NCBI GenBank assembly: GCA_030704615.1
Contig: CM060732.1
Coordinates: 4,092,001 to 4,156,000 of the forward strand
Direction of reading: 5' to 3'
DNA length: 64,000 bases
From: Takakia lepidozioides
Taxonomy: Eukaryota; Plantae; Bryophyta
The position numbers and the translations under genes are program-made. Positions 6,857-64,000 of this stretch are shown here, piece by piece; position 1 is the first letter of the stretch, and the number at the start of each line of letters is the position of its first letter. Below the pieces are notes generated by a model. It was given only the letters and a program-made list of their open reading frames with translations. It was not told the DNA's origin and did no database searches.

Positions 6857-6859
6857 CTA

Positions 6860-8429: not shown

Positions 8430-8540
8430 TGCTAACTTTAATACGTGTGGGGGGGGGGGGGGGGGGGCACCTAAATAAACATAGCCGTGACTAAACTCCA
8501 CTTAGCCACGGTTAAATCGGGCAGTGCGGCTGGGGCATTA
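8430..8540 (-). mobile_element. PIF/Harbinger-like terminus
   Basis: Reverse complement TAA-TGCCCCAGCCGCACTG matches TAA-GGCCCCGGCCGCACT at 15783; subterminal similarity to 18970-19065. Confidence 0.4.
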
Positions 8541-8542
8541 GA

Positions 8543-8898: not shown

Positions 8899-9196
8899 TT
8901 AGAAAGCTACTCGAAAAAATAACTTGAGAGCCATGAAGGCTAGTGTTGGGGGGTTTTAAGCTTATTAATCATTAAAATCATTAAAATCTGCAAAAGATAT
9001 GACCTAAAATGTGATATGGCGCAACTCGAGTTGGCCAATACCTATCCCTGAATCGCAACTCAAGACATGGAAGATGATAACATTCTCATCCACGATGATT
9101 CTCATCCACTGATTTGTTCATCTATCATTGACAGTTTTCCTCACTTTTACTGAAACATAAGTGCGAGATGACCTTGGGTTTTCATCCATATCATGC

Positions 9197-9204
9197 TAGG
9201 GTTT
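9197..9204 (-). promoter_or_regulatory. Telo-box (AAACCCTA) just upstream of RPF1
   Basis: TAGGGTTT ~90 nt before the ATG; telo-boxes are typical of plant ribosome-biogenesis genes. Confidence 0.45.
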
Positions 9205-9291
9205 AAGGCACAAGTGAAGCATTTCTCTGTGGTGGTGTGACGTCCCTTGTTTCTAGATTTCTTTTGCTCTTTGTGTGATCGGAGTTGTCTA

Positions 9292-25563: not shown

Positions 25564-25589
25564 CACTACAACAGATGAGCGTTTTTATG

Positions 25590-26280
25590 ACTTCACATAT
25601 GACTATTTTTTCAGTCTTATATGCGTTCATGACTACATCACTCTGTAGTGAAAAAAGCCCTGTCATAGCGACTAGTCTTTAGGACTGCGTTTTGCAAGTC
25701 ATATCCGTGACTGCTTGCGTGGCACCTGGAGTCCTGCTGCAGAGAGGGTTGCAGTCACAACTATATGACTAATATATGACTACATTGTCTGTTGAGCGCT
25801 GCCTACATGGAGAGGCTTCAGCGGGACACGTGCGCCACTGCGCAAGCGACACGTCATGCATTCGTCAGGGGATCATATGACTATATGTCTGCAAAGTGAT
25901 GCCTACATGGAGAGGCGACGGATGGACACGTGCGCCACTGCGAATTTGACATGTCACGACTTCTTGCCATGATCATATGACTACATGTCTGCACAGTGAT
26001 GCCTACATGGAGAGGCGCTAGCGAGACACGTGTGCTATGGCAGATTTCACACGTGGTGACTACATGACTCGCTCATATGACTACAGGGATGTCTACATGG
26101 AGAGTTGTTAGCGGGACACCTGTTGCACTTGAGATGTGACATGTGGCACACAGACAAAATATATGACTAGCATATATGACTACGGATCTTTACACGTGGT
26201 GAAAATATGGATAAAGAATGTCGTGTCATATACTGCCACGTGTTCTGGTTTGAGCAAGAGTGATGCCACGTGTCATCAAG
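25590..26280. repeat. CACTA left subterminal repeats (ATGACTA motifs; ~100-bp units gcctacatggagaggc...gacacgtg)
   Basis: Four related units near 25800, 25900, 26000 and 26090, plus many catatgactac motifs. Confidence 0.85.
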
Positions 26281-26738
26281 ATTGTTTTCCGAAATATTTT
26301 ATTTTTTAATGTTCATATTTTATTTTTAGTTTTCATTTAATATTTAAAAGAACAGGGAGATTGCAGCCTTGGATTTTTTTTTAATGGTATTATTTTTAAT
26401 ATTATTATTTAAAATGAAAGTGAATTAAATGATTTAAAATCTTCATTACATGGTGAAATTCCAACATGAAAACAGAATGGATCCCTCCTGCATACTATCA
26501 ACCACAAGGAGAATGAAAATAGTCAACTACAGGGCAATACAAGCCCTATAAATCACATTACAAAAATCCAAATGAGACCAATGTCCCAATGGACACCTCA
26601 AAAGCCACAAGGTCAAAAAATCCATGCCTCAAAAGGCCCAGCCAAAAACAAGCAAGCCCACACATGGGCTGAATTGTTGTAGCTAGTATGTTCTAGTGCT
26701 ATTAGAATCAAGAACTCTGTTAAACAGTGCAATACTGA

Positions 26739-29700
26739 CTATCCCTTCCGCAGCTCCATAAGTTTCAGTAACTTTAGACTCCAAAGTGTTGTCTGGCCAA
26801 CCACCTGCCCCAACTCGGTCTGTTTCCTAACACCATTCACATATGGTAGAGGGGTGTTACTGACACATGCCTCTTTGATGTACACACAGGCATAATCAAG
26901 GGGCACAGCAGGGTACCCGTAACCCACCACAGCACCTTGAAGAGCAACAATCAGCCCTACTCCACATTTCTTGCGTTTGGAGTTCACATCCAACAGCCGA
27001 ACCTCGTCACCCACCCTGAACTGTGATCCCAACTCCACACAAAAAAGAACACGATGTGAAAACCCATGACATACACACGACTAGGACACTCAACATTTGC
27101 GAATTAAAGAGAGCCCCAAGGTTGGAAAAAATAAAACAAACAAGACAACGGCCTGGACTTACTCCATTTGCAGTCTCCAGTGGTGGTGAGACCTCTTTGG
27201 GGGGCTACTCGCCGGGTCGACACTCTTGCCCCTCGTCTGTACCGGCTTGTCGACAATATCACCTTTGTTTGTCACAAGTTCCTGTGTCACAGACCAGAGA
27301 ACAACCAGGAAAGCAATGAGCAAACAAGAATAGTGAATAGAAACAAAATCCAAGTATGAATCAAACAAAAAAAGCCAACATGAAAAGCTGCAAAGAAAAC
27401 CTAGCATTAATCAAGCAACCGAGGAGAAGCATCCAGGAAAGCAATGCAATGAATGAACCCACAAAATTGTAGCCTCTGGAGCACTGTCAGAATGTTTGTA
27501 CCTTCACAGTAGCAGTGTTGTATGGTTGTTGTCCGAAAACAGGCTGAGACTCCAAAAACTTGGGAATACTGGCAGCTTTCGATGCCTTCCACAAGAAAGG
27601 CCACAACACCTCTGTTAGATACTCATCAGTTGGTGAATCTGGTTGCACCTTCCATGGCTCTGGAAAAATCCCACTGAAGGGAGGATTGTTTGCCGCCTTT
27701 CTTGGTGTGTCGTCAACAAGAACAGTGTCCTCATAAGTCCATTCTGGCCAGTCTGCCCACACTGTAGACAAGTTCTTGAAATATAATGGCTTTGAATCAG
27801 ACCCCTTACGGCATGGGAGGACTGGATCCTCACAGTGAAGGGCATCCCACTGGAAAACCAGGTTAGTGTGGGCTGCAAAAATATAGTCCACCATTGGGAA
27901 GAAGTTGCGAGCTTGGCAACAAGACCACACCGCCACCTCAAAGTGTTCAAAACACTTTTGCAAAAAGTCATAACAGCGTGGTCTCAAAACTACCATCTTC
28001 TTGCCACACATCTTCCCCACAAAACCTTTGGGAAGGGATGCAGGCCCATTAGCAGAATGAAAAGATTCACATAACAGACCATTTAAGTCCAGAATTAGTA
28101 AATGCTTCCTCGTTGGTCCAGGAAGTAAACTGACATTTGGCTTCAACATGTGAGCAGGAGAAATTAAAGCAACCTTGCTTGTTTGTTTTGTCCCCGTCTG
28201 CATCTTCCTCCCCATTTAAACTCCCACATACCTGCATACCAGAATCCGGTGTGCCCGGCGGCTCTGTCACCATTGCCCCCTGGACTGCTACTGCCTTTGT
28301 ACGTGGCAAGGGCTGAATTTCCACGTGTACCTCACAGCTGGCCTTCCCTGTATCCTGCTGCTGCTCGGTCAAATTCAAAAGATCATCAGTGACAGGAAGA
28401 CATAAGGGCTTAGAGTGAGCACCAGTTACCGTCTGAAATTGGGATTCCAAACATTTTGATACTGTCACAGAAGACGTATCCATCGTAGATGTCACTGGTC
28501 CTGCGCCTGGTAGATTAATCCCCAATCTGGTCACAATGGCTTTCTGGTACTCAATCATACTCTGCATCTGTAATTTTAATTCTGCCATGTCACGTCCTTG
28601 TGATTCCACCAGTTTGTCCAAGCCATCCATCCTGCCAACTACTGTAGAATATGCGAGACTTCCCTCCTGCCAATCCATGAAAACTTGCCCAAGTATGAAT
28701 CAAACCAAAAAAACCTAGCATGAACAACCATTGGAAAGAAAACCCAGGCCAAAAGCCGTGAAAAAACCCTAGCAACCTATGATGCAGCAACCACTCTAGC
28801 AAACGTGGAAAACACACTTACCCGCCTGTCACTCCCAGCTGACAACCGTGACACTGAACCCTCTTGAATTTCACATAATGTAGGAGGGCACCCTGATAGT
28901 GTTTCCTACAAATTAATCCATGGCACAAACAAACCCATGCCACAAGTCAGTAAGCAATGTGAGGGTTGACTATATACACATAGCAATTCAATGAGGAACA
29001 AAATACAGAGTCGTGATGATGCCACTTACCAAGCGTGCTTCCACCATTGTCTTCCCACCACGGCCAGTCTTGGTAGGATTCAGAATTGCACCATTTGCCT
29101 TCTTCATGTTGCCCGACACTTTGTGGAACACCTCTGTCTGCCAGTAACTTACAAGCTTGTTCCATACCTCGTCAGATACAGTAATGGGTTTCCCCTTACC
29201 ACCCAACCACGCAGTGTGTGCTTCATAACGCTGGCTCTTCATTATTCTGCCAATTGTTTGTTTTAGGTGGAAGTCTTTTAACTTGTGTGGCGTATATGAA
29301 AATAGCTTAGCCAGGTGATCTCTGATTTCGTATACAACTTCATCAGGTTGGTTGTTGATGGCAAGGGAACAATCTAGCTTGCGATAAGCCTGTCCTTTAA
29401 GGGCAGCGTGCCATACATTCCGGGTCTGACCATACGGGGCTCCTTTGAGGTTCGTCAAAATCACCGTGGGAGGAAGACCTGCAGCTATTCTCTCTTCCTT
29501 CACCTTGGCAGCTTCAATTTTGGCTGAGCTATTAGCCCTCCTTAAAGCATTGGTTCTATCATTCTTTGAAACGGCACCCTCCCCTCCTTCAGAGACCTCC
29601 GTGCGCTCAGGAGAATTCAAAGCAGGATCCTGCCAAGTAGGGACTGGTGGCCATGGCTGTTGGCCAGAAGGCCGAGGACCATACTGGCCATACTGTCCAT

Positions 29701-31019
29701 AAGCAGGAGGATATTCCGGTGGCCTGCCACCCCCATAGCTATTAGGGGGTGGCAAATATGGTGGAGGAGGATACTGGCCATACTGCCCATATGGAGGAGC
29801 ACCATATTGACCCTGACCATACTGAGTGCCAGACTGTGGGTACTGAGGCATACCATAATAAGGTGGGGGTACTGGTGGCACAGAACCCACAACGATGGGA
29901 GAGTTAGGGCCACCTCCTGCGTTCTTGTGGGCGCCATCTCCATTGCTAGCAGCAGGGATCGTGGATCCAGTGCGCTTGTGCTTGCCCTGAAAAGAAATTC
30001 CCCAGTACAATGTGGGTGATTACACATACATATAGGCAGCAAGCAGCAAATCCTTGAATTCAATATAACAAACTGGAAGCACATATCATTTGTAAAGACA
30101 AGATTACCCAAAACTCAGTATGATCTTGGGCAGTAAATCTCCCAAATTTGATTGGCCCCAATGATGTCCTCCCAGTACATTTTTGAGCCCTCTTAGGTAT
30201 GGGGTGTTCCTGAAATCCATAGCAAGAATTCAAATGGACAAACCTGATGGGTCCATGAGAAGTATCCCTCCAAGTTTTACTGATATTCTGGGTGCATAAG
30301 TAACCCAAGTATCTCTATAAGTAGCCATTGTAGCTTAGTACCAGGACGTTGGTTTCATGGGGCAAAGAATTTGAACACACCTGAAGTCTACATTGGCCTG
30401 ACATCATGCCTTTGGCACTTCAACTTGTCTAGTGGAAATCATTTGTGATTGTGCCTTGGCTGACCCCTGCATTGTCCAACTTCCCTGTCTTGACAGACAT
30501 ACCCTATCTCTTCATGATCTTACCATACCCTATCTCTTCGTGATTTTACCAAAAACATACATAATTTGAATCATGGTCATTGTGAAGAACTATAACTCAC
30601 AGACGGAGAAGGTGTTCGTAGTGTAGATGATGGGCGTTTTTGTCCTGCGACATGAGCATGGGCATGTTCTCCTCGGCTTGCCGTGGCATCCGCCGACGAC
30701 GCACTCGCCTCGCACTGGCGTGGGAGGAGTGGATCGTCCTCATCGTCCTCAGAAGAGCCCTCATGCAGAATCGTAGTCTTCATCGTCTTCAGTCTGGCAC
30801 TTTGCCTTGCAGGACCTTGATCCCTAGCTTTTTCCTTCGGAGCGCGTGGCTTGCGAGGGCGATTCGCTCCCGCAAGCCTGCACAAACACCTCCATGACCT
30901 CCCTCTCAAACAATCACAAACAAATGCAAGCATACATACCCTAATACTCTTAAGCCTACGCTGAACCACAGCCGCACCCTACCAGGACGTAATGGCTGCC
31001 CACGAATGACGGCGGACAT
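26739..31019 (-). CDS. CACTA second gene (TnpA-like), ~900+ aa, spliced: low-complexity + Ptta-like + coiled coil + FCP1/NIF phosphatase-like + Tnp1/En-Spm-like. Exons ~30601-30877, 29030-29986, 28822-28905, 28232-28666, 27502-28140, 27163-27281, 26739-27015; first exon uncertain
   Basis: GT-AG junctions give a continuous frame; WNKLVSYWQT...KANG...TKTGRGG (Ptta-like); VGDEVRLL...PLPY...LGQVVGQTTLW (Tnp1/En-Spm-like). Confidence 0.72.
27502..28140 (-). CDS. FCP1/SCP-like (NIF) HAD phosphatase domain exon
   Basis: RKHLLILDLNGLL...VVLRPRCYDFLQKCFEHFEVAVWS...LVFQWD..HC...KPLYFKNLSTVW...DTVLVDDTPRKAANNP..SGIFP: HAD motifs I-IV with no stops. Confidence 0.88.
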
Positions 31020-31443
31020 CTCCCGCCTAATGACACACCCTCCTCAAACCTAATCGTCACTCACTGCATGTTGTTTGCCTCTCTGTTTGTACAAGTCGCA
31101 GCTACTCGCCCCCATTTGTGCTATGAAGCTTATGATCGCTGTAGGAAGGTTAGAGGATAAGGCGAATCGCAAGTTTAGTGGGTGGGTATCCAAAGTCAGG
31201 AACTAAACTCACCCATCTATCGACTGCTTGAACGTTGCTTCCACCTCCTTTATGGCAGCAATCCGGCGCTCTCGGAACTTCTCGTACTCAGTGAGAGGGA
31301 CTGTCACTTCGAAGACCTTCCGCTTCACCATGGACACTCAGAAACGATACTTATAGTATACTATAGATATAGAAATAGCACATTGGCAGCTGGTGCATGC
31401 ACTGTGCGTAGCATGCAAAGAGGGAAGGGGTGACGTTCAAAGC

Positions 31444-34400
31444 ATGTACAGTGCAGGTGGCGAACGGATGCGTAGGCGTAGAATAGATGACCGTCTATGG
31501 CGAATGGAAGAAGCTTATGCCACAAGGAATGGGCATACAAAAATGCTATGCAACTGCGATGAGTGTCATGGAGGAAAAGTACTGTTGTTGGAAACAGTGA
31601 GGAATCATTACATGATACACGGGAGGGATCCTCTTCTCCAACGCTGTTCTCTTCCGGTAAGATCGTCACTTTCCCTTCAGCACTTTAGTTTGAATTTTGA
31701 ATGCAACGATCCTCTTCTCCACATGTCGACATTTCGTTGGGTGATTGTAGTCAAGAAGTCATAAGATACAGACGTGACTATGACTACGCCACTTCCGTTA
31801 TCACTTTAATTAATGCACATGTCGTGTTTTCATTGGTCATGTGTAGTCATGTAGTCATATATGACTAAGTAAGTGACTGCAACTATGACTTCAATGGTTA
31901 CAAATGTCGTGTTTTGATTGGGTGTATATTCATAAGATACATACGTAAATATGACTGCATCACTGCAACGTCACCGTGCCTCCTATGTCATAATATGAAC
32001 AAGTGTCACATCGTTGTTGGTCCACTCACAAGATGACTATTGGGATGCAGGGATGTGAATATTCAGATGATGAAGACGAAGGCCCTGCGGCACAGCGGGA
32101 GCCCAATGTCACAGAGAACGCAGATGAGAGTGGTGGATTGGAGGTAAAATGCAGCGTGCATTGCAGGAAGCGTTTCTCTTTGCAGATGCAAACAGAGAGG
32201 ACCCCATTCATGGTGGAACCGATCACACATTTGCCGATCATGACGATGATCTCGACGATTCCGGAGACAATGAATTTGATGAGAATGCTCACCTGCACGT
32301 TGATCCCGAGTATGATAAACTCTTCCGACAGTCGCAATGTCCACTTTTTGAAGGGTGCTCCATCAGCCGGCTGCAAGCAACTTTGACGTTGTTGAACGCA
32401 TGCACTACCCACAAGTGCACCAATGCATTTGTGGATGAGCTTCTGGGATTGTTGCGTAAGAGTTTTTTGCCTAAAGAGAATTCATTGCCGAAAACTCACT
32501 ATGAAGCAAAAACCATGATTGCCAAGATGGGATTGCAGTACACGATGATTCATGCCTGTGAGCGTGGTTGTGTACTCTTCCGTGGGGAGTATGAGAATGT
32601 AGACATTTGCCCAGTGTGCCGCAGTTCCCGTTACATTCCAGGTCGTGGAAGTGTGCCCAAGAAAGTATTGCGACACTTCCCTGTCATTCCAAGGTTGAAA
32701 CGTATGTACCGATGTAAATCGATCGCTAACCTCATGACATGGCACGACAGACATAAGAGCCAGGATGGGTTGGTTCGACATCCAGCTGATAGCAAAGCAT
32801 GGAGACACATTGACACCACATTTGCGGATTTTGCTGCAGAGCCACGATCTCTGCGATTTGGATTGGCCTTAGACGGTGTAAATCCCTACGGAGCTCAATC
32901 CACAAGTTGGAGCACATGGCCCGTTCTCTTGGTCAATTACAATCTGCCTCCGTGGTTAATGACCAAAAAGTTCTTTGTCATGTTAGCGCTACTGATTCCT
33001 GGTAAGGAGTCTGTTACCTCGGACAACGTAGATGTTTACCTGATGCCCCTAGTGGAAGAGCTACTGGAACTATGGAGAGGGATTGCAGCTCATGATGTTT
33101 CCCGTCCTCGTGGTCAACGCGAATTCACACTGAGGGCAGTGTTGATGTGGTCAATCCATGACTACCCTGCATATGGCTTGCTCTCAGGTCAAGTGACGAA
33201 AGGTTATGCTGGTTGTCCAGCTTGTGGACCCGGGGTGACTTCACAGCAGTTACACACATGTGGAAAAATTGTTTTCCTAGGCCACCGAAGATTTTTGGCC
33301 CGCAATCATCCATATAGAAGGTCAAGAATGTTCAATGGCGCTACTGAGCATGGAACTCCTCCAAAAACGCAGACTGGAACACAAATCAAGGACCTTGCAA
33401 CAGCTCGCACTGCATGGGTGGAAAACGGAGGGACGCCAGATAGCAGGACAGACCCACAAAAACTCATGGAGTTAAGCGATTGTCAATTTTATATGTCTTA
33501 CCTTATTGGGAGGTAATTCCTTCATGGCCTTTAAATTGGCTGTGTACATTTTTGCGTTTTCTGTTTAAATTGTGATGAGTAAATGCTCAATTGCTTATGT
33601 GTTCATTTTGTAGGGTCTCCTCATCCGCCACACGTTTGACGCAATGCATTGCGAGAAGAACTTGGCTGAAAATATTATTAAAACTATCTTTGGTGAGAAA
33701 GACACATTGAAAGTTCGCCGTGATTTGGAGCTACTTGGGATGCGCCCGGAATTGTGGCTACAACGTGATCCTGACAGAGCAGATACGTTAATTATGCCTC
33801 CTGCCCCTTATGTCCTCACTGAGGCTGAGTTACAAGTCTTTCTGGAGATTGTGCAGAACTTGAAAGTGCCAACAGGCTACGCATCAGCTTTCAAAAAGCA
33901 TGTGGTGAAGAAGAAGTTGTCTGGCATGAAATCACATGACTATCATGTGCTCATGCAGCAAATTATACCGCTTGCTATCCGTGGGCTCATGCCAAGTGGT
34001 CCTCGAAGGGCCATTTTGCGAGTATGTCGTGTATTTAAGAAGTTGTGTGCAAAAGTGGTGAATCCCTGTAGAGTATGAGGAATTGAGAACTGAAGCAGTT
34101 CTCACTCTGTGTCTTATAGAGAAGGAGTTCCCACCATCATTTTTTGATGTGATGACACATCTGGTTGTTCACCTAGTGGATGAGTTGTACTTATGCGGGC
34201 CCGTAGCATCTCGTTGGATGTACCCCATGGAGCGGGCAATGAAAGATATGAAGGGCTACGTAAGAAACATGGCAAGGCCCGAGGGGAGCATGGCAGAAGG
34301 ATACCAATTTGAAGAAGCATTGGGTTTTTGCACAGAGTATATGGCAGGATTTGATGGAAGTGTACGAAGGGTGTGGGATGCAGATGAGGCAGAATCTGTG

Positions 34401-35594
34401 GAACGTGAAGTTGTGGAAGGAAGTTCTAAAGCCCGAAAATTGAATGTCTTGTGTGATATTGTACATGAGTACATCATTCAGAACCATCCTCGTCTATCAG
34501 TCATGTTGGGGTAAGAAATCTACTTCATTGACATTCAAATTTCCAAGTTTTGGTCATTTATCATTAGTTGGCATATGGCGTCTTTTCAAATCTCCCACGC
34601 CACCTCTGTCAATCTCCTGGCTGACCCTCGGATTGTGACAGGATATATGAAGCAGAGTCCACATGGATAGAAGCCAGACGACGCTTGTTTCGTGAGGAGC
34701 AAGGGCTGGAAGGCATGAGCAATCCCACGGCAATTCAGTACCCTCCTGATTTGCATCCTTGTCCTCCATTTGCTGTTTGGCTCCCTCAAGGTGTACGGGA
34801 TCATCTCTCAATTCAATCAGATGGGCTTGATCCTACAACACGTGAGGAATTACTGGATCTTTCAAGGCCTCCATCATTTACTGCCCTGTCATTCAAGAGT
34901 ATGACAGCGTATGGTAACCATTACAGGGTTACATCCCCCGACATGAACACAACAAGTATGGTGTCTTTTGATTGTGGAGTCTCATCTGTTTTCCAGCACC
35001 AGCCCATTACCAACAATTCAGGCAATGACATGGAGGAACCTACAAGATATGTGGGTCTTATAAGGGAGATTTTGCAAATTGACTATGGCCAAACACAGTC
35101 TATAGTGTTTTTGTGTTCATGGGTATGGGCGAGTCGCGTGGGTCGTCAACCTATGTCAATGAAGCAGGATGATGCTGGCTTCACACTTGTCAATTTTAAC
35201 CGTATGCTTCCACCTTCTGAGCAACCTTTTGTGTTTCCTGGCCAGGTTGATCAAGTGTTTTTTTCTGATTGTGTGAAGGAGCCGGGGTGGAAAGTCGTCT
35301 GGAGAAGAGCCCCGAGCACGTAGAGTGGTCTGCGACATATCAATTGATAATGATGATGTGGCGGAAGTGGAAGGATTGTTAGCCCCACAAAGACTAGAGG
35401 AGACTCTGGTTATTGATGGCCCAACATGCAGCCGAGCGGTACCGGTTACTCCAGAGCAGGTGGCCTCCTTGTACCTCCGGGCACCCCGTATACGTGGTGA
35501 TGATGTTCAGCCAACCCTTGGACAAGATCAAGTCTGTGATGAAGACAGTGATACATGTAGTGACCCAGACATAGATGAGGATGATGAAGATTAG
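31444..35594 (+). CDS. CACTA Tnp2/TnpD transposase (Transpos_assoc, Transposase_21, DUF4218, DUF4216); exons 31444-31656, 32051-33512, 33614-34510, 34642-35594; ~4 frameshifts
   Basis: CNCDEC...TVRNH; IHAC..GCVLF; RHPADSKAW; GLALDGVNPY; YNLPPW; HDYPAY; MHCEKN; GMKSHDYH; FPPSFFDVMTHL; RWMYPMER; QPFVFPGQVDQVFF. Confidence 0.93.
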
Positions 35595-35699
35595 ATATGC
35601 GCGATTTGTGCACTCCAGTTATAGACCATGCATGATAGTTTAAGGTGGTAACACTCCCTTCGCATCCCATTAAGATATCATGCTTGGACACTGGATTTT

Positions 35700-36960
35700 A
35701 TGATCAATTATGGAGTGCTTTCCTTTCAGCACCCTTTATTCATTTGTTGTTGCAATTGGCTTTGGACCAACCCGTGCTGGTACCATTGCCATGGGTTCTG
35801 CCTGCAATGTTTTCTTGCCATGGATTCGGCACACGCCACGAAAGGCCATCCAGACCATCCTCTGGAAATGCTCCAATGTTGTTTCAAACATCTCCACATT
35901 GCAATGGATACAACACTGACATTAGATGAGTGAAAGTGAGACTAGACCTCCAGCTAGCCGGCTTTCCCACATCAAATTGAAGGGGATCTGTAGATTATAG
36001 ATAACGGCTGTTGCCTTCTCAATGTCTTTTCCAATCACCTCTGCAATGAACTGGGGTATAAGATCCTTCAAATCACAAGTTTGAGCATCACGCACAAGCC
36101 ACTTACGGGGATAGAGTTTCCAATGCGAACCATTGGTCTTTTATTGATAGCATTGTTGTAAAATACATGGACCAACATGGTCAATTTCGGGAATGACATA
36201 TAGTACGCTTTCATGTACTATGTAAGCATGCAACTATGTACCTGTGATGTGGCTTGTTCGCCACTTAACCTGTTTGCCCATTCAGCCAGCTCCACATTGT
36301 CATGGATTTTGCATGCTGGATTGTGAGGCCATCCACACCGTCCTCTGGAAATGCTATCATGGGGTTTCAGCTATGTCCACATTTCCCTGGATTATGCCTG
36401 CACGAAGCAAGGCCAACTGCATTCAGCACCCTCCACTTTATTATAGTATTGCAGCAACATTCAAAGCACTTCAATTTGTATCCATCGAAAACATCTAGGC
36501 TGGAAAAAGACATTGTTGCAGCAGAACTTAGGAAAGTACTTCTCCCCTTCCACTACACACGTGAAATGAAAGAAGCCAACCAACAGCATACCAGCCAAGA
36601 AAATATGAAACCAGCCAAGAAAAGAGCCAATATATGCAGTGAAGGTCGACACTAAATGAAACTTATCCAACACTTACATTAGAGGAGGGAAGCTAAGTCT
36701 TACCTCCATAAGCTTGCCCACATCAAATTTGGGAGCTTTCAGAATTTTTCCTTTCCGGTTGAATGAACTTGACTACAAGATCCTTCAAATCACAAGTTTG
36801 AGCTTCACACACAATGAACTTGCAGGGATTGAGCTTCCAATGCGAACCAGGAATCTTATATTGATAGCATTGTTGTAAAACACATGGACCAACAATGACA
36901 GTCTCTGGAATGACATATAGTACAGTAATGACATATAGTACAGCATGCCGCTTCCAGTTG
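35700..36960. repeat. Internal duplications within the CACTA (35700-35930 ~ 36290-36450; 36060-36240 ~ 36780-36950)
   Basis: agatccttcaaatcacaagtttgagc and ggccatcca.acc.tcctctggaaatgct each occur twice. Confidence 0.75.
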
Positions 36961-37330
36961 ACCATCTACCCATGTAGGTTTCTTGTACCTATCCTTCCAC
37001 AGGGAATCATAGGTAATGTGGAGCTTGAAATCCAGCCCTCTTGGATGAATCTGGACCCACACTCTATCTCTGCTCCTTCAGCTATCCATGCCTCTGACAG
37101 CCTACAATTCTACCAGCAAACACCCCAACTATACTGGTGTGGAGTTCTTCCCCAAAACACACCAACCCTACTTATCACAATCTGAAATGCATCTGCTTCT
37201 CTGTGTAGTCCAATAGGCATTCGCCTTTTTGTCTCCATTGTCCCACCATTGGGGTCGGAAAGTGTTCACCCCAAAGCTTCTCCTCACCTCTATTATATGT
37301 TTTTGGATACTTCCCTGCTGCCACACTGGC
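36945..37330 (-). pseudogene. Captured OSB (organellar ssDNA-binding) PDF-motif fragment with its intron
   Basis: QWWDNGDKK | IHPRGLDFKLHITYDSLWKDRYKKPTWVDGQL matches the OSB PDF motif (WWDNR..K.NP..PDFKHK.T...LW....P.WV..QL). Confidence 0.75.
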
Positions 37331-38775
37331 AGTAACTTGCCAAAGTCACTCCAAACCACCACAGATCTACCCAACGACCTAACTTACATAATTCAATATG
37401 CATCTTGCGGCCGAGTCTGATGAGAGGGCAACACAGGCTGAAATAGGTTGAAGAAGAAGGTGCCCTACCACATTGTCCTTGACCTGTCCTGACCCATGGA
37501 GGATTTGACCGATGACCTCTTGTGTGTGCTGCTTGTGTCTGCAGTCAGGTAATGTCGGATTGGTCTGTCAGATCGAACCACTACGGCGTAGATGAGTAGT
37601 CAGAGATTGAAACACGCTTGCTAAGACCAAGCTGACTCTCCCAAGAACGGCGAGCTCGCTTCTCCTCGTCTCCTCTCCTCCTCCTCTTCTCCTTCATGCA
37701 TCATTTGCTCAACGCCTCCATCCCACGCCCCTGCATATCCTGCTATCATCGTATTCCATCCCTCAGCTATGTGGTGTGGCGCAAGAGACAAAAAGACGCC
37801 AAGTCCCAGCCCTCCTTTCTGTTCACGATTACACTAATGGGCAACCTTATTAGCAAAAAATTTAACTTTTTTAAACCTAATGGGCAACCTTATTTGCATT
37901 ATATGTGCCTTAAAAATGACACGTGTAGTGATGTAGTCGTATAAATGGAGCTCTGAAACCATCTTCAGTCATGGAGTCATAAGATTCCATGAAACGTCGT
38001 CCACGTGTAGTCAAACATATCACACTAGTCATATAAACCATCCCTGTCATCATGGTCAACAATGTTTGACCAATGCTCCCTAACTTTCCGGAGTCATGTA
38101 GTGATATCCATTACTACAAAGTCATAAAACTAAAACTGTAATGCATTTCAGCGCTCTGTAGTCATGTACCTAGTGCAGTTTTTATGACTCCGGCAAAGCC
38201 GTAGTCCTAAAAACGCTCATCTCTTGTAGTGAGTGTAGAGTTAAGTCATCCAATCGTTTGTTTGTCTGAGATACTGGCCTATCACTTGACTCATCCTCTC
38301 CTTCAAGTGGTTCCATTGGTGTCTCACCGATCTCCCCTAGGCCTTTCTCCACCTGTATCGCTGTCTCCACAACTTCATCAATGTTCTGAAATCTGGTCCC
38401 AAGTGATTCACTACACTGATGACATGAACTAATAGAGAACCAAGCAGCAACTAGCAAGGGCATGGAAATCATGAATGTGTAATATCCTGCCTACCAAAGA
38501 ATGCCAAAAACAACCATGTTCATGAAGACTCAATTTTACACCAGAATTGTGATTGAGTTAGCATACCGATGTGGCTGCACTACCTGTACACCCCACCCTA
38601 GGCCTTTGTCACTCCTGGCGCTACCTGCAATCTCTTGCAAACTTGGTGTAACGTCCAGTTTCCTTCTCCTGAGATTGCAACAAACTTCCCGGTGTTAGGG
38701 TACTGGCATAGCACACTGCCAACAGTAAAGAATTATCTAGAGTAGTTGCAAAACAATGTAGAAACTGCTTATGTC

Positions 38776-41690
38776 TTAAGAAAAATATATACAACACCGC
38801 TGATCCCACTGCGACCCGATCGAGATGTATTCACATCCCCGCGCCTTAACACCATTCGCCTGGAACTTCCTAAAATCTGATGAACCCCAACTAACAACTA
38901 GTTGTGCCCATGTCTTGTCTGGAACATGATGGAGTGTGGGCAGCCCCACACTATAGTAATTTTTAAACAGTTTGTTTTGTTGGTACTTGAGCTGCCCACG
39001 GTTCTTGTAAGCATACAAGGACCAGTCCAACCAACGTTGACACTGACCTCGTAGTGTTATCAACCATTGGTTCTTTCATGGCCCTTCAGGGTTTCCAGCT
39101 TCAACACAAGCAATGTAAAATTTCCTCCTCCCTATCACCACATTCTGAGCAGCCTGGTCCCCCAGCTCTCTTGCAACTGCCCTTCTTTCCCTCCTTGCTG
39201 CTGTACTCCATCATAGTGGGATGCTGAAGGTTGTTGGCCACCAAAACTGAACCTGCCCCTGCTGGTGTGGTCTTGCAGGACTAGTAGGATAGAAGGAGGA
39301 AGTAGGTTGGGTGTACATAGGCCAGGGAGGATACATACTATGAGGATGCACTCCATAATGGGGGTAAATGGAATACCCTGCACCTTGACTAGGATCATGC
39401 ATTGGAGCGCCTGCAGGTGGAACCACTACAACACCCCATGGGATTTCCAACCATTGATGTTTCACTATCATTTTCACTATTGACACATTTCACTATTAGT
39501 TTCACTACATAGTCAAGAATTGCTGCTAAGACAGTAACCTCAATATGTAATAGTTAAAAATTTCACAACTATAGTGAAGTTTTTTACTGTGTGGTAACTA
39601 GTACTGACACATTCATCTAGCGAATGACATGTGTAATTGACAACAATATGATTTAAATTATATATTATTTTCAAAAAATACCAGTGCAAGTGTTGACTGT
39701 AGTTTGACTAGAATGGCACGAAACCAGTGAAATGGTTGTAGCTTGGTAAACATCAGTAAACATATACAGAACACCTTCATCCACAAAGTAAATAGTGTGA
39801 AAGCTCCCAGAGTTGATGTGGGCAAGCTTATGGAGGTAGAACTCGCTTCCCTCCTCTAATTTAAGTGCTGGATAAGTTTCAGTTTAGTGTCGACGTTCAC
39901 TGCATACATTGGCTGTTTTCTTGGCTGGTATCTTGTTGCTTGGCTGCTTTCATGGGGATCACATACAGTGAGGAGGTGGGAGCAAAGATAGAGCGACATG
40001 TTGGTGAGTTGGAAGAGCTTGAAGGGGAGCCTGTTGAGGTATCAGGGGCTTACATTTCCTATGTGTAGTGGAAGGGGAGGAGTACGAACGTAAGTTCTGC
40101 TGCAACAATTTTTGTTTTCCAGCCTACATGTTCTTGCTGGATATTAATTGAAGTGCTTACAAATCCGAAACTGCTGGTCTGACATGTCTGGTGAATCTTA
40201 GTGAAATGGACTGCCAACAATTAACAAATATTTTAAAAAATGGTTTTAATGTACTGGTTTTGAAAACTACACCTTGGACAGGTCTTCTATGACGCTTAAT
40301 GCACATTTTGTGATCACATTGTCCAATCCAGACCTACATCTACATAGAACTCATTACTTCTGACATATAATTGGACACTTAACTACATTGGCAATTTGTG
40401 AAAACAATAGTCTGTAGGATTCATGCGGAGACCTTAATTAAGCTTTATTCAGTAGAAGCTAGCGCTGTTTGCAAAATCATGTGTACAATTTGTTGTATAG
40501 GCTGGTCCGTAAACAGGGCTGCAATAATTCATTGAAAACATTCTCTTCATACAGATGTGAAGATTTAAAACAAATACTCCACAACCAACCATGGAATATA
40601 TGCAGGTCTCGACAAGTAATTGTGCAGCAAGTGTAAGGCCCACTCTACAGCAACGAAACCTTCAACACCTCGCAAACCTGCACTACTTGCATATGGATTT
40701 CTAATGCTCGTCATCACTTGATGAATGGCTTAATTCAGTTGAAGACTCTGCGGCGGATTCTTCCCCATCCTCTTCTTGTAATGATGGAGCCCTAATAACT
40801 GCCTGAATGGGTGCAAGTTGAAGTTCTGGTCCAGATTCAGGGGCCTCATCATCTCCTTCGAACTCTCCAATGGAAACATTTCCCACATTGCCAATCCCTC
40901 TCCGCGACCTCGGGTCCTTGTGCAAAACAACCTTCCAACCAGCATTCTCTGTATCATCATAAAAAAAAATACTTGCTCTACTTGTGATGGATAAATGAAT
41001 GGCTGATCATTTTCAGGAAGGGTACGAGCAAAGTTTACCAGAGTGAAACCATACTTATCTTGTTTCATGGTGGCATTCCGACCCACCATGTTTGCCTTCA
41101 CCCAAGTGCACCTGAAAAGGACAGGCCGTAATGTGCCATAGTCCATTTCGAAGATCTCTTTGATCACTCCCACATATTGAAGTGAAGCCCTAACTAGATT
41201 AGAGTCTGCAATAGAACTTCTACTGTCTTGCTCAAATGTAGAGCATACCCCACTGTCAAACGTGATGTGCTGTCGTCCATCGACATGTTGCACCCTGTAG
41301 TGATTGCCATAGGCCATCATAGATGGGTAGGACTTGACATGCAAGGACGGAGATACACTGAAGCGAAGCACGTCTGAATCAATGTTCTCACCGTTCTCAA
41401 GAGCCCTCGCTACAGCGACCTCGAACCACTCCTCAAATTTTGGTGGTAGTTGTAGCTCCTCAGGATATGAAACATGCCGATGTCTACCACGACGATGACC
41501 TCTTCCCCGTTCTCGTAGAAATAGCTCCCTCTCTCCAATTATTCGTGCTTTTTCTGTCTCATACTCTCTGTTACAATATTATGAATGAATCATTTAGCAT
41601 TCTACATGCATGGAGCTGCTGCTACTCTCTCCCATTCCTCCCCTTCTTATTGTATCCCTCCTATGCACCTATCCGGAAAGTTGTTCAAAC
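38776..41690 (-). mobile_element. Second, degenerate CACTA fragment: Tnp2 C-terminus (DUF4216) followed in the same orientation by TnpA-like remnants
   Basis: 40730..41371 MAYGNHYRV...YVGVIKEIFEMDYG...QPFIYPSQVEQVFF; 38776..39063 VPDKTWAQLVVSWGS; 39810-40130 is an inverted homolog of 36480-36730. Confidence 0.82.
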
Positions 41691-56560: not shown

Positions 56561-56751
56561 CATTGTGAGCCTATATCCACAGTGCATGAAAGTGATACTC
56601 CCATTGGGTCTTGCTCTTTTAATTTGCATAGCATTTTGGAGGTTGGAAAGTCCTCCCATTTCAGCATGTTGCCAAGGGATTTTTGGTTGGGATGGGTGTG
56701 GGGGCGCCTTAGGCTGCCCTTGTGAGGGTGGGAATGTCATGACATATGAAT

Positions 56752-58370
56752 TCATGGCGACATCTTCAAAGCTGGAATTGTACCAGATGTCATTCTGAAC
56801 AAGACCCTGGTGGACATGTTTGCAAAATGTGGGTGCATCGAGGATGCAAAGGGAGTGTTCAACACTATGGCTGATCAAGATGTGGTGTTGTGGAGTGCGA
56901 TGCTTGCAGGGTATGCACAGCAGGGACATGGGATGGAGGCTTTGGAGACCTATATGAGCAAATGATGGGGGGAAGCACATCATGTTTGTGTGCATTTGCA
57001 ATGCTTGTGCAAGCCTGGCAGCCCTGAAGAAGGGCAAAGAGGTGCATGGGGATATCATCAAAGCTGGAATTGTACCAAATGTCAACCTAAACACTGCCCT
57101 GGCAGCTCTGGAAAAGGGGAAAGAGGTGCATGGCGACATCTTCAGAGCTGGTGTACCAAATGTCATTCTGAACAATACCCTGGTGGACATGTTTGCAAAA
57201 TGTGGGTGCATCGAGGATGCAAAGGGAGTGTTCAACACTATGGCTAAACAAGATGTGGTGTTTTTCCCTCTCATTAGACTCGGCCCTGAGATGCATATTG
57301 AATTTTGTAAATTAGCTTGTTGGCTTCTGAAAGAGGATCAAGAGAGGGAGTCCATAATGCCTCTTCTGGCTCTTCTGGGCATTTGAAGATGCTTTGTGAG
57401 GCAGGCAGACTGAACGAGGCTCTACAGACTTTAAACCATGGAGCATTTCAGCAGATTCAGATATGTATGTATGTGTCTTGCTTAAGTGCATAAAGATGAA
57501 AGGTCTAGAAGCTGGAAAGCAGGTGCTCACCCACATCATCCAAAGTGGACACCCTTGTCAACATGTATGTTAAGTGCGGGAGCATAATGCCTCAACGATC
57601 TTTGATTACGTGGAATACAATGTTGGCAGGATTTACCAAGCATGGGTGTGGTAGGAATGCTTTGGAGACATATGAGCAAATGTTGCGCGAAGGGGTGAAG
57701 CCCAACCACATCACATTTGTTTGTGTTTGCAATGTGTGTGCAAGCCTGGGAGTCCGTGTGCTAAATCGTCAAATCTGGAATTGTATCATATGTCATTCTG
57801 AAGACTGCCTGGTGGACATATATATCAAATGTGGGTGCATCAAGGATGCAAAGGCAGTGTTCAACAATATGGTTGAATGAAATGTGGTATCGTGGAGTGC
57901 AATAATTGCAGGATATGCACAGCAGGGGCGCGGGGTGGAGGCTTTGGAGACCTATGAGCAAATGATGCGGTAAGGGGTGAAGCCCGACCCCATCACGTTT
58001 GTTTGCGTGTGCAAGCCTGGCAGCTCTAGAAAAGGGCAAAGAGGTCCATGGCGACATTGTCAGAGCAAGAATTGTACCAAATGTCCATTTGAACAATACC
58101 CTTGTGGACGTGTATGCAAAATGTGGGTTCATCGAGGATGCGAATTAGAGAGTTTTCAACACTATGGCTGAACAAGATGTGGTGTAGTGGAACGCGATGC
58201 TTGCAGGGTATGCACAGCAAGGACGTGGGATGAAGGCTTTGGTGTTCTATGATCAAATGATGGGGGAAGGGGTGAAGCCCGACCACATAACATTTGTGTG
58301 CATTTGCAATTCATGTGCAAGCCTAGCAGCTCTGGAAAAAGGCAAAGAGGTCCATTGTGACATTGTCATT
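56752..58370 (+). pseudogene. PLS-class PPR fragments (two or more pieces, including an N-terminal LCEAGRLNEAL segment)
   Basis: Repeated DVV.W.AMLAGYAQQG / TLVDMFAKCG / GKEVH motifs with many stops and frameshifts. Confidence 0.9.
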
Positions 58371-58789
58371 TGCAATCCCCCTTTCATCTCTACATCTGTT
58401 TGCTGTTCAAAGGTAGGCTTCCTGGTCACCTGATCCTTAAGCACCCAAGACTTAACCTGGTTGGAGTTATCAACCCACACTGCAGAAGTGTACTCCAAGG
58501 CAAGCCTAATAACGCGACAAAGCATGGTTTATTTTACTTCAGAGTTGATCCAGATTACCTATCATTCCCTGTGGAAGGGCAGGTATAAGAAATAGATGGT
58601 CAACTGGAAGTAGCAGCAGCAGCAGCGGCACAATTGCACCTTCTTCAACACATTTCACCCTGTTTTTCCCTCTTATTAGAATCGGTCCTAAATTTTCATG
58701 TTGGATTCTGCAAATTAGCTGGTTGAGTGAACCTTTGATAGTTTGGAGTGACTGACATGACACTGCCAATGTGACAACATGAAAGTATC

Positions 58790-59213: not shown

Positions 59214-59370
59214 CACTACAACAGATTGCGGCCTTTTATGACTCCCATGGGTGCGCAGTCATGACAGATTTGTGGCATAAATGCCATTTGCAGTCGTAAA
59301 TGCCTTTGAAGTCATAACGCAGGTCTGGGGAAGACGTATATGCGACTACATGACTCCGGACTCTACGCAA
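59214..59370 (+). mobile_element. CACTA terminus of a related family
   Basis: CACTACAACAGATTGCGGCCTTTTATGAC plus ATGACT/AGTCAT subterminal motifs. Confidence 0.75.
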
Positions 59371-59374
59371 CACA

Positions 59375-61080
59375 GGTCAAACGGTTCAAAAACGGAATGG
59401 AAAAAAAATCATGTGCACGCGAAACGCAGTCCAACAGGTCCCACAATAATAGCAGATGAACCAGAATTCATTGAATGGATCAAATGAATTTGAGCAAATA
59501 ATTAGGTTTACATTGCCTTTGATTGGGGGTTTCTGCTACGTATCGATTTTGTTTTTGGCTCAATTTTGTTGGGCGGCTTCAAGCCTCCCACCGCTACATC
59601 CTTGCAAACATTTGGACCAAAAAAAAAAAAAAAAAAAAAAAAAACTCTTCGCTCACTATTGCAGAACTCTCTATAAAGAGTGCATGTAATAGAACGCAAA
59701 TCAAGTTTGGAGTGCAAAACAGGGAAGAAACTATGGTTTTGGGTCCAAATGAATTTTGTTCACTCCAAAAATTGGCGTGCACGTAACATATGTCCTCATT
59801 ACACATACGGTTCAAAAATGGAATGGAAAAAAAATCATGTACACACGAAACACAGTCCAACAGGTCCCACAGTAATTGTAGATGAACCAGAATGGGTCAA
59901 TGGATGGTTGCCCATCCAAATCATTTTTGTTTGCTTTCAAACTTTGCCAGTACGTTCGGTATACCCTCTCACAGGTCCCGGACTAATATGAGATCAATCG
60001 AAATTCATTCGATGACGGATGGTTGTCCATCGAAATGATTTTGGTTCGCTTTGAGACTTGTCCAGTATGTTCAATGTACCATCTAAGAGGTCCCAGTGTA
60101 ATATAAGATCAATCGAAATTCGTTCAATTGGCGAATGAGGCGTTCACCTCTCATCCAATTTGTGTTCATTGCGAAAAATAAATCTTGCAATGCGTGCACG
60201 GCTATTGCACCCATTTAACGGATGTGGTTGAAGCCCACATTTTGCCCGCATGGCCTTGGACATGTGTGTGACACATGTGCAGAGACACAACAAAAGAAAA
60301 AAAATCATTTGCCTCCCCATCGACGCGCTCACCCCTCAACGAATTTAATTGAATTTAAATGAATTTGAAGCAAATAATTAGGTTTATATTGCCTTTGATT
60401 GGGGGTTTCTGCTACGTATTGATTTTGTTTTTGGCTCAATCTTCTTGGGCGGCTTCAAGCTTCCCACCGCTACATCCCTGCAAAAATTTGGACAAATTTT
60501 TTTTAAAAAAAAATTAAAAAATATATATATATATATTCTCTTCGCTCACTATTGCAAAACTCTCTATGAAGAGTACATGTAATAGAACGCAAATCAAGTT
60601 TGGAGTGCAAAACAGGGAATAAACTATGGTTTTGGGTCCAAATGAATTTTGTTCACTTCCAAATTTGGCACGCACGTAATATATGTCCTCATTACACATA
60701 TGGTTCAAAAATAGAATGAAAAAAATCATGTGCACGCGAAACGCAGTCCAACAGGTCCCACAGTAATAGTAGATGAACCAGAATTCATTGAATGGGTCAA
60801 CGGATGGTTGCCTATCCAATTCATTTTTGTTTGTTTTCAAACTTTGCCAGTACGTTCGGTATACCCTCTCACAAGTCTCGGACTAATATGAGATCAATCG
60901 AAATCCATTTGATGGCCCAACGGATGGTTGTCTATCGAAATAATTTTGGTTCGTTTTGAAACTTGGCCAGTATGTTCAATGTACCATCTAATCCCAGAGT
61001 AATATGAGATCAATCAAAATTCGTACAATGGGCCAACGGATGGTTGCCCATCCAAATGATTTTCGTTCGTTTCAAGACTT
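59375..61080. repeat. Non-coding repeat with ~880-bp tandem duplication (59480-60130 ~ 60355-61025) and ~105-bp sub-repeats
   Basis: atgagatcaatcgaaa...ggatggttg units; near-identical blocks. Confidence 0.85.
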
Positions 61081-62046
61081 GGCGATGTCCTCTACAACTA
61101 TGTGCCCCACTCCAGTATGCCGAAGGACACAAAGACAGGCAAACCGTGGCGGTACAGCCGGACCCGGAGCCCTGCTTTCATCCAAACCCTCATGGAGACG
61201 TGCTCGGATGTCCAAGGGCGGATTCTTGACCTCACATGTGGCACGGATAAGCCTTCACGTGCTCAGTTTGTCCCCTGGCCCGATTGCAATTTCATGCCAC
61301 AAGCTATTAACCGCCCGCTTTGTTCCTCAGGTGCTTCAATGTGGGCAGGGACGTTGTCCGACAGGCATGTGTTTGCCTTCGAGCCAGATACTGCCCTCCA
61401 CAACTCGGAACTTGCAGCGGCTGAACGTCTGCCCAAAGAGGAAGAGGCACCCTCGGAGGATGAGGAAAAACCCGAGAAGGAGCAGGGGGAGGAACAAGTT
61501 GGGATCAAGGCCGAGGAGCCCCCGGTTTACGAGTGAGTGGTCGCATTGTAAGTTGCCTCGAGATTTCGTGAGGCACCTCCCTTTGCTCTCTTATTTCATT
61601 GAAAACCCTTTCTGCTTCTGCTGGTATTGACATTCTTGAAGTGGATTTGTTCTTACTGTAGGATGCCAAGTACTGCAGGAGGGACGTCTACACCGGAGTT
61701 CATGGGCAGGAGGAACGTGCCTTTTTTTGCCAGGGGGGATTTCATGCCTAGTCCAGAAAGGGACTACATCCTTCCCACTTATGCTGCCCGGCTTGCTTCG
61801 GTGTCCATTAGGAGGTCTTCCGAACCTAGTCGTGTACAACAGATTTTAGACGAGGCAAGCCTCAAGAAAATGAAGATGAGGGAGGAGACAGCAGATATTA
61901 GAGCCCGTCGGGCTCGTAGATTTGTCTTGGATTCTGCTGAGGAAAGTGGGGGAGAAGAGGCAGAAGATTCCCAGGAGGTGAGGTGGACAGTCCCCCAAAG
62001 AGAGGATGGAATTTTTAAGAGGCATAGTGCAACCGATGCATCATAG
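61078..62046 (+). pseudogene. 5'-truncated amino (N4C/N6A, beta-class-like) DNA methyltransferase SAM-binding half plus acidic tail; exons 61078-61246, 61331-61532, 61662-62046
   Basis: Spliced RTRSPAFIQTLMETCSDVQGRILDLTCGTGASMWAGTLSDRHVFAFEPD fits the N6_N4_Mtase C-terminal pattern KP..L...LI...S..G..VLD.F.GSG.T..A....R...G.E.D; first intron donor reads ATAAG instead of GTAAG. Confidence 0.62.
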
Positions 62047-62694
62047 AGCTCGGAGGATGGGGGGGATGAGGGGGATGAGGAAGGAGGAGGGCCAAGTTCC
62101 TCGGAAGGTGTAGGAGAGTAGTTCCCATTCCTGCTATGTCAGTTAGGACACACTTGTATAGACGTGGCTTGCCACAAAATTTGCAATAAAATGTTGCATT
62201 TCATTGCTATGACGAGTCCACATGACCCTATTTCCGTGGACACACAATGGCCCGCTCATGTTTTTTTTTTTTTCCGCTCATGCTCATGCCGCTCATGAAA
62301 TAGCAGCCCCCGGATAGAGCAGGCTTATTCATCAAATAAGCCTGATGAATGAATGAAGTTTTGAGAAGATTTCATCCTGATGGATTAGAGTCGGATGAAA
62401 TATGAAAAACTTCACAAGGATGGATACATTATATTGTAGATAAAAACCCTTTATTACATTAATTTTTTAAATAAAACTCTGGATTTTTTGTGATCATTTT
62501 TTAACAACAACTGGGTGAAAGGATATTGCCCTACCATATTTTCAAAGTAAAACTTTTCTAAAATTTACCTCAAAAAAATAAACTACACCCTATATTTGTT
62601 CTCAAGTGGTTTTGAAAATACGGGGAGTGACCCCCCCAAGGTGGTTGTAGGGGTATCAGGTGGGTGTGTATGGTGGGGTATTGTTTCAAGAGAT

Positions 62695-64000
62695 AAGGAA
62701 GACTCCGGTCGAGGCCGGCGTAACTAAGAGTCATTTCGCCTTGCGGCTACTGCTCCCTTTCGAGGGTGGGCCCTATATAAATATGACAGGTGTCCAGGGG
62801 GCACCAAGTAACCGGGGGTATGAGGTACCTCTGGGTACCCGAGGGTACCCAGGGGTACCAGAGATGGGGTGGATTCGAGTTTCCGCTTATTGGTTATGAT
62901 GGCTGTGAGAGAGCGAAGTGCCGTATTTGGTGCCTACAGAGATGACGGAGAGTGGGCCCATGGCCCACCCTCGTCGGCGAATAGCAAGGATAAGCGGAGC
63001 GTATTTTTGGTGCTTTTCGAGGATAGAGGTGTGCGGGAAGCGGTCGTGGCAGTACGTAAATTCGATGAAGTGTATGATTAGTGGTGGGGTAGGAGTTGAC
63101 AAACACAGGGTCATAGCTAGGATGATACTGTATAGTCTGGGGGTCTACCTTGGTAAGTGCCGCTGGCATTGATGAGTGAGAACTATCTGGTTTCTTTATG
63201 TCGTTGTAATAGTTTGTGGATGTGCCATACAGCTTGATTGTGCCTGGCGATACGAAGGCCATGCAAGACTGGGTGTGAGCATTTACTGAGGATATGTGGC
63301 CAAGTGTCAGATACTGCATGTATATGGGAGCAGATGGGGCAGTGTGGGGATGTAAAAATGGTTGGCCAGAAGGTATGTTTACGCTGGTGCCCCCATATAC
63401 TGGGCGAATCTAAACTTAAGTATTTGATTTGTGCGTCGGAAGCGGCTTTGGTGTGCCAGAAGTGGTTGAACAGTTTATGATGGAGTACTGTGGAGTGTGT
63501 CCATTTTTGGATATGTTGTTTGGTGTGACTGAGAGATGTAGTGGCTTGTTTGTTGGCTTCTTTAGATAGAGTAGAGCGGAGGTTACGAATAGGTTTAGGT
63601 TCGGGGGGGCTTGGAATTGGATGTATTAGCCAGAAAGGATGCGTATGTGCAGTGTGGATGGGGTCTGTGGAGGGTTCTACTGGGGGTTTGGAGGCCCCTA
63701 GTTGGGCAAGGAGGTCAGCCTCCTCGTTCCCGTTGATTCCGGTATGTGAGCGTACTTTAAGAAATTGAATGGGTTGGTTGATTGAGATGGCTAAAGTGAT
63801 GATTGTTGAGATAAGATTACGATCTGGGTGGTGATGGTGGAAGGATGGGCTGGCTATGTGGTTTCGCAAGAGAAAGAGCGAAGTTAAGTTGTCTGTAAAA
63901 ACGTAGTATGGTGAGGGGAATGCGTGTAGCTGGGAGAGGGCTTCGTAGATGGCCATAAGTTCGGCACATAGTATGGTTGCGGGGCCCGGAAGTCGATGGG
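62695..64000 (-). mobile_element. Non-LTR retrotransposon 3' part: RNase H, CCHC knuckle, RLE remnant and 3' UTR (Dualen/RandI-like)
   Basis: AELMAIYEAL..YVFTDNL...FLKVRSHTGINGNEEADLLA (RNase H); CPICSH...DTWPHILSKC..RIARHNQAV; IIHFIEFTYCHDR...EKHQKY. Confidence 0.85.

Follow-up and report, generated by a model that had tools for sequence, protein, structure and literature searches.

The question raised by this locus is what kind of gene left behind an open reading frame (ORF) that lies within transposon DNA towards the end of a 64,000-nucleotide stretch of the genome of the bryophyte Takakia lepidozioides (NCBI GenBank assembly GCA_030704615.1, contig CM060732.1, positions 4,092,001 to 4,156,000 of the forward strand). 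This whole 64-kb stretch is called the window below, and positions are counted from its first letter. The frame in question, which contains position 61102 and stays open between 61060 and 61533, reads DVLYNYVPHSSMPKDTKTGKPWRYSRTRSPAFIQTLMETCSDVQGRILDLTCGT, continues through 28 in-frame codons (61247–61330), and then reads GASMWAGTLSDRHVFAFEPD followed by an acidic stretch. The original prediction, made from the sequence without database searches, saw here a 5′-truncated, intron-bearing remnant of a bacterial-type amino-methyltransferase gene embedded in transposon DNA, and suggested that a transposon family might encode its own enzyme for writing N4-methylcytosine (4mC) or N6-methyladenine (6mA). 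The first of these claims was borne out and the second was not demonstrated. Positions 61084–62046 very probably represent the dead 3′ third of a transposon accessory gene, with two exons followed by a tail exon; in that gene a ParB-like part and a beta-class amino-methyltransferase-like domain are joined.

The match of the fragment to a gene family is far beyond chance. A family hidden Markov model (HMM), built without the window's own row and searched against the six-frame translation of the window, gave E = 3.3e-19 with two domains placed around an 84-nt insert, and nothing else in the window was matched. The first domain (48.1 bits, i-Evalue 1.3e-13) covers 61084–61246 on the plus strand and begins mid-exon with the D of DVLYN (61084), right after the last, cut unit of a tandem repeat. 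From this point the homologous reading is DVLYN...SPAFIQTLMETCS...ILDLTCGT, up to the insert. This exon remnant without its 5′ part (DVLYN...KPWRYSRTRSPAFIQTLMETCSDVQGRILDLTCGT-G) holds the motif-X helix and the first half of motif I, the S-adenosylmethionine (SAM) motif, and was matched by exon B1 of the related locus L008 with E = 4.3e-11. The second domain (16.5 bits) covers 61331–61533 on the plus strand, which completes motif I, contains the motif II region (GASMWAGTLSDRHVFAFEPD) and runs on into the acidic stretch; this part could be aligned to the relatives L001, P0067 and L003. Exons were searched separately, the unspliced in-frame ORF was used whole, and natural intronless relatives stood for the joined form.

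The 84-nt insert (61247–61330, plus strand) is in frame and contains no stop codon. Its acceptor is good (ttgttcctcAG), its donor side begins with AT, and its 28 residues fall in gap columns against intronless relatives and are skipped by the family HMM. In L001, L002 and L008 an intron with a GT donor occurs at the same codon phase. In the lineage of L003, L004, L005 and L006 there is no intron within motif I, which reads ...RVVDLTCSTGASILATRACGRHLLAFEGD... in one piece; L003, L004 and L005 read DLTCSTGASILATRACGRHLLAFEGD straight through, with DLTCSTGASIL at the splice site. Because relatives carry same-phase GT-AG introns and another lineage carries none, the joined reading is right and the insert is an intron relic (AT...AG) whose donor decayed from GT to AT, by a G to A change. 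The proposal that removing this intron restores motif I was therefore confirmed. A second intron of 128 nt (61534–61661, plus strand, GTGAGT...TGTAG) has the donor phase of L003 and L008 and leads to a conserved C-terminal tail exon (61662–62046, plus strand, ...RDYILPTYAARLA...RRFVLDSAEES...), which is open to a TAG at 62044–62046; a GT at 61977 is a candidate further donor. The tail of L003 as a tblastn query found this exon with E = 0.002, and the same exon was the best match of a tail HMM in the window (E = 0.029). Both the second intron and the tail exon are conserved in position and phase, the intron in all lineages, in agreement with the further spliced exon ending in RFVLDSAEES that had been proposed. 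The family can accordingly be divided into two gene lineages, one with the motif-I intron (the window, L001, L002 and L008) and one without it (L003–L006), the next intron being common to both. The motif-I intron is a clean marker of gain or loss and helps to sort the lineages of this gene family.

The relatives examined were the contigs L001, L002 and L008, the metagenome loci L003–L005, and the loci L006 and L009–L012. On the minus strand of L009, a GH3 host gene (auxin-responsive, PF03321) at 6538–9413 and a copy of the accessory gene are separated by about 5 kb, confirming that the “metagenome” contigs are plant nuclear DNA. In a phmmer search against 1.84 billion proteins, the only true relatives were P0002 (7e-6), P0004 and P0006, all fragments of the same family; they are short ORFs on plant-like contigs that stop or deviate just after the G-x-G loop. 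The top phmmer matches P0001, P0003 and P0005 were rejected, being bacterial beta-propeller repeat proteins in which only SDGxTMW was matched. A protein search restricted by a length window returned no homologue of the window ORF, and no DNA-level similarity was seen between the window fragment and any relative locus compared.

The relatives suggest what the whole gene looked like. The best-preserved copy, L008, carries on the same strand and in this order ParB/Srx-type exons, a long middle region, a motif-IV-like exon, the two exons seen in the window, and the tail exon. Its ParB/Srx-type signature exons read ...MPVVRPAGEVDILKL... and ...FYIWDGNHRHMAWTRY..., and the exon just before the window-type exons reads AYAVDLIIVDISNGSPIPW...WNVWNPKYW.... 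In L001, L002 and L008 alike, the signature ...FYIWDGNHRHMAW... lies upstream on the same strand and is followed by the long middle region, an exon reading AVDLIIVDISNGSPIPW..., and then the window-type exons. The layout is the same in L006, of the intronless lineage; ...IWDGNHRHMAW... exons lie upstream on the same strand in L001, L002, L008 and L006. In L003 and L004 the catalytic-loop exon is directly upstream of exon B. Judging from these gene models, the full-length gene is a putative transposon accessory gene in which a ParB/Srx-like N-terminal part is fused to a beta-class amino-methyltransferase-like domain. This fusion lay outside the view of the original prediction. In 1.05-kb tandem repeats upstream of the gene on L008 (positions 1–2400), the palindrome TCGTGGTGCCACGA (6+2+6) occurs six times, and the ParB-like part is a candidate to bind there. 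In L010 and L011, ORFs on the minus strand upstream of the gene gave no Pfam transposase match.

The methyltransferase-like domain was assigned by several tests that are weak individually. When two divergent relatives were searched against Pfam, PF01555 was the sole methyltransferase family reported, and it matched where expected, at profile positions 148–218: it was the best Pfam match of exon B1 of L001 (12.2 bits, E = 0.17, profile 148–188 of 221) and of L003:431–880 (13.5 bits, E = 0.068, profile 163–218 of 221). Against PDB, the best match of the family profile was the N6-adenine DNA methyltransferase DpnA (5hek, residues 167–227 of 240, E = 0.0096). With hhalign, the exon-B profile aligned to residues 195–254 of Escherichia coli YhdJ (P = 0.0011), and the profile of the upstream exon, exon A, aligned to residues 33–86, where DPPY lies (P = 0.0024; a broader profile gave 0.019), placing VDLVFLQFPDG on VDLIFADPPYN; the exon-A and exon-B halves are collinear on YhdJ. 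All of the 30 nearest named ESM-Atlas clusters of L003:431–880 carry PF01555 (top score 0.95), and for the window ORF a PF01555 cluster first appears at rank 14 (score 0.89). In the relatives, motifs X, I and II follow the catalytic half and lie C-terminally, as in beta-class enzymes, and the window holds the X-I-II part only. The beta-class motif order that had been read from the window itself is thereby upheld, since full-length relatives have a motif-IV-like exon upstream of the X-I-II exons. As these tests agree, the domain is probably beta-class-like.

A number of results weigh against this assignment and against the picture of the whole gene. As single-sequence queries, the window ORF and the exons matched nothing in Pfam (E ≤ 10), NCBIfam or PDB. 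All Pfam scores obtained for relatives are below the PF01555 gathering score of 26.7 bits, and by the Pfam criterion the domain is not a PF01555 member. The link to PF01555 that the original prediction proposed to check has to be qualified: two relatives had this family as their best Pfam match, but far under the cut-off at 12–13.5 bits, and the window ORF had no Pfam match. The exon-A profile found no match in PDB. AlphaFold2 modelling of the exon-B part of a relative, from a 24-row alignment, gave a mean pLDDT (predicted local distance difference test score) of 43, which made the model unusable. The ParB/Srx motif was recognised by eye; scanned exon by exon in Pfam, the ParB-like exons gave no ParB match, and a weak DUF1015 match (E = 0.051) was obtained on the DGNHR exon. 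Finally, the unrelated class-I control PrmA aligned to exon B with P = 0.0026, barely separated from YhdJ. This last result, together with the second PDB match of the family profile, the protein arginine methyltransferase 4lwo, whose E = 0.012 stands next to that of DpnA, would fit a fragment from a generic class-I SAM methyltransferase acting on protein, RNA or small molecules, with the likeness to PF01555 reduced to the shared GxG loop. We regard such an origin as improbable. The beta-class match extends beyond the loop to the motif-X helix (KSPAF... on HPTQKP/QKS...), at the C-terminal end of the protein; the upstream exon, which finds the DPPY region of YhdJ, fails to align to PrmA (P = 0.56); PF01555 is the one methyltransferase family reported by Pfam; and all 30 of the ESM-Atlas clusters carry it.

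Whether a beta-class-like domain of this kind could write a DNA mark depends on its catalytic loop. The window lacks the motif-IV exon, owing to the break at 61084, and the loop can be seen only in relatives. Ten copies of one lineage have QFPD, QFPN, QFPY or HFHG aligned to DPPY; L002 has DLPD, and L008 has DISN with GSPIPW after it. The canonical (D/N/S)PP(Y/F/W) is absent from every relative examined. Three other placements were considered and discarded. DVLYN is not a variant of motif IV, as the relatives have a separate upstream exon aligned to the DPPY region of YhdJ; SHPY/LHPY in L001 and L008 sits in a different, earlier exon; and the MAFFT placement of IIVDLPDG of L002 against a later segment was overturned when the register was fixed by L008. 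The search for full-length copies with DPPY or SPPY that had been suggested thus succeeded in one respect and failed in the other: full-length relatives were found and are transposon cargo, but their loops are QFPD/QFPN/QFPY, DLPD and DISN. The original prediction had itself said that its proposal of a transposon-encoded writer would be contradicted if no copy had a catalytic motif IV, and for canonical motifs this is the situation in the relatives examined. Because of the non-canonical loop, the writing of 4mC or 6mA by this family is unproven.

In an intact copy, the ParB-like part would bind the element's own repeated palindromes and so bring the methyltransferase-like part to the element. 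This likely mode of action is drawn from what is published on algae and from the arrays of palindromes that adjoin relatives. With its non-canonical loop, the methyltransferase-like part may bind SAM or DNA without methylating. It is unlikely, in our judgement, that the family is an active self-marking system in which the ParB-like part sits on its own palindromes while the methyltransferase-like part writes 4mC, 6mA or another mark despite the QFPD-type loop. If it were, other transposons, for example the neighbouring CACTA element described below, would pick up pieces of the system.

As for the copy in the window, everything upstream of the D of DVLYN, that is, the ParB part, the middle region and the motif-IV-like exon, is gone, and the intron within SAM motif I has a donor mutated from GT to AT. 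The truncated gene might nonetheless still be expressed and act; it could, for instance, yield a short protein that binds SAM or consists of the acidic tail, or an RNA interfering with the full-length gene. All three exons are open without a frameshift, there is an in-frame ATG at 61117, and an AATAAA follows at about 62189. Set against these features, there is no promoter evidence, the decayed donor puts 28 foreign residues inside motif I, and folding of only half a Rossmann-type domain is unlikely: the pLDDT of 43 mentioned above belongs to the corresponding part of a relative. Continued activity of this kind is very improbable, and the fragment is presumably without function now. The locus is a non-functional relic; its main use is in annotation, where it accounts for an otherwise orphan open frame. 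The interest lies in the family, a transposon cargo that would pair a ParB-like DNA binder with a DNA-methyltransferase-like domain, and the intact copies are the ones to study.

How the fragment reached its present place has to be read from its two borders. On the left, the fragment directly adjoins tandem repeats from the subterminal region of a CACTA element. The CACTA-type terminus CACTACAACAGATTGCGGCC (59214–59233, plus strand), a unique 20-mer, is the 5′ end of a rightward-running element and lies 1.87 kb upstream of the fragment, where a CACTA end had been predicted; its first 12 bases are the same as the 5′ end of a 12.7-kb CACTA element at 25564–38231. The CACTA that starts at 59214 has the 5′ end CACTACAACAGA and subterminal tandem repeats. 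Within the CACTA end, Tandem Repeats Finder and self-BLAST delimited a repeat zone (59890–61083, no strand assigned) with tandem units of 115–120 bp at 59902–60125 and 60755–61083, the last of which is cut after ...ACTTGGC, the candidate microhomology named in the original prediction. A higher-order duplication of about 0.64 kb (59525–60135 and 60401–61036, 87% identical) is also present, and each of its copies ends in tandem units. Separately, a piece of about 100 bp (59383–59483) recurs at 60702–60800 with 93% identity. No second CACTA end, target duplication or transposase was found from 59214 to 64000.

On the right, the fragment would have been cut off by a retroelement. A T13 run (62261–62274), read from its sequence as the poly(A) end of a non-long-terminal-repeat (non-LTR) retroelement on the minus strand, and a ribonuclease H domain (PF00075, E = 2.8e-5) in a minus-strand ORF at 63183–63956 suggest that this element bounds the fragment about 0.2 kb past the stop codon. 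CCGCTCATG motifs occur on both sides of the T13 run, and non-LTR-like sequence spans 62261–64000 on the minus strand.

Two routes may have brought the fragment here: a deletion or illegitimate recombination at the tandem array, which is prone to recombine, or its capture by the CACTA element. In the first case, a neighbouring or nested CACTA and the carrier of the gene would have been joined, with the left breakpoint in the tandem array and a junction unique to this locus. The break interrupts both a tandem repeat unit and an exon, the region is densely nested with transposons, and the natural stop codon and 3′ flank are kept in the fragment; on the other hand, neither a terminus of a carrier element nor a palindrome array or other part of the gene was found nearby. 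Indeed, the 64-kb window contains no other exon of the ParB-methyltransferase-like gene, including the ParB/Srx exon, and no palindrome array. We give this course of events about an even chance. In the second case, the CACTA would have taken up the gene fragment as cargo (transduplication, “Pack-CACTA”). The position of the fragment, 1.87 kb inside the CACTA end and just after the subterminal repeats, is the usual place for captured pieces, and the fragment is genomic DNA with introns. Against capture, the window does not contain the other CACTA end, and no second copy of the fragment or of the junction occurs within it. Capture is possible but somewhat doubtful. Nothing about the neighbouring CACTA indicates that its family is the one to which the ParB-methyltransferase-like gene belongs.

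Other features of the window are mostly further transposon sequences. The element at 25564–38231 looks complete, with ends CACTACAACAGA and (reverse) CACTACAAGAGA, and its ORFs include a Transposase_21 (32149–33516, E = 5e-75), a trace of a TnpA-like Transposase_24 (28988–30010) and a NIF/FCP1-type phosphatase domain (27487–28215, E = 4e-17). The two CACTA elements of the window share no DNA similarity beyond their 12-nt ends. DUF4216, a domain associated with CACTA transposases, was found at 40730–41371 on the minus strand (E = 5e-11), and a Ty3/gypsy gag ORF (PF03732, E = 4e-11) at 353–1735, also on the minus strand. Directly to the left of the CACTA end, at 56750–58430 on the plus strand, decayed pentatricopeptide repeat (PPR) pieces occur in several frames (PF13041, E = 3e-15; PF01535, E = 1e-11) and look like a pseudogene or an array.

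Among known systems, the family resembles the bacterial and phage PF01555 enzymes (YhdJ, DpnA-type 5hek) in its motif order IV...X-I-II. Its KSPAF-x12-G-x-[VI]-[LV]-D-L-T-x-x-T-G aligns with HPTQKP-x12-GD-x-VLDPF-x-GS-x-T of PF01555, and its R-H-x-x-x-F-E with GR-x-x-IGIE. Unlike these enzymes, the family scores below the Pfam cut-off, has QFPD, DLPD or DISN in place of DPPY, contains spliceosomal introns (one of them inside motif I), and carries an acidic stretch and a conserved C-terminal tail. Bacterial-type amino-methyltransferase domains also occur in other eukaryotes. N4CMT of bdelloid rotifers is reportedly a host 4mC writer of bacterial origin. In Marchantia, also a bryophyte, DN4MT1a/b is a host gene with TSPPY for which 4mC activity was shown (10.1101/2021.02.12.428880). 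By their descriptions, DN4MT1 and N4CMT are single-locus host genes with a canonical SPPY and demonstrated activity, whereas the present family appears as transposon cargo in multiple copies and lacks a canonical motif.

Transposons that carry ParB-DNA-methyltransferase genes have been described before, so far only in algae, and our literature search found no paper on this ParB-methyltransferase-like gene in bryophytes or other land plants. In red algal Plavaka elements (EnSpm/CACTA), PAG2 combines an N6-adenine methylase with SET, and PAG3 combines ParB with a 2-oxoglutarate (2OG) oxygenase (10.1101/2025.02.11.637652). Plavaka and the present family have in common transposon-borne domains of the ParB and N6-adenine methylase types, and tandem inverted-repeat arrays adjoin the Plavaka ParB gene. 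However, the red algal domains are in separate genes, with SET and 2OG oxygenase, while here both appear to be in one gene. In the brown alga Ectocarpus, the accessory gene of Sola1-1 encodes a ParB-like domain and a DNA-methyltransferase of the N4-cytosine (N4C) or N6-adenine (N6A) type, and is transcribed opposite to the transposase (PMC12477816). As in Sola1-1, the gene discussed here would be transposon cargo with a ParB-like domain and an N4C/N6A-type domain, proposed to bind and mark its own element, and the location of relatives of the window fragment beside repeated palindromes was counted towards this likeness. The comparison is made with the published description of Sola1-1, from which the present family differs in its land-plant host, in the non-canonical loop of the relatives, and in that the window copy is a dead 3′ fragment.

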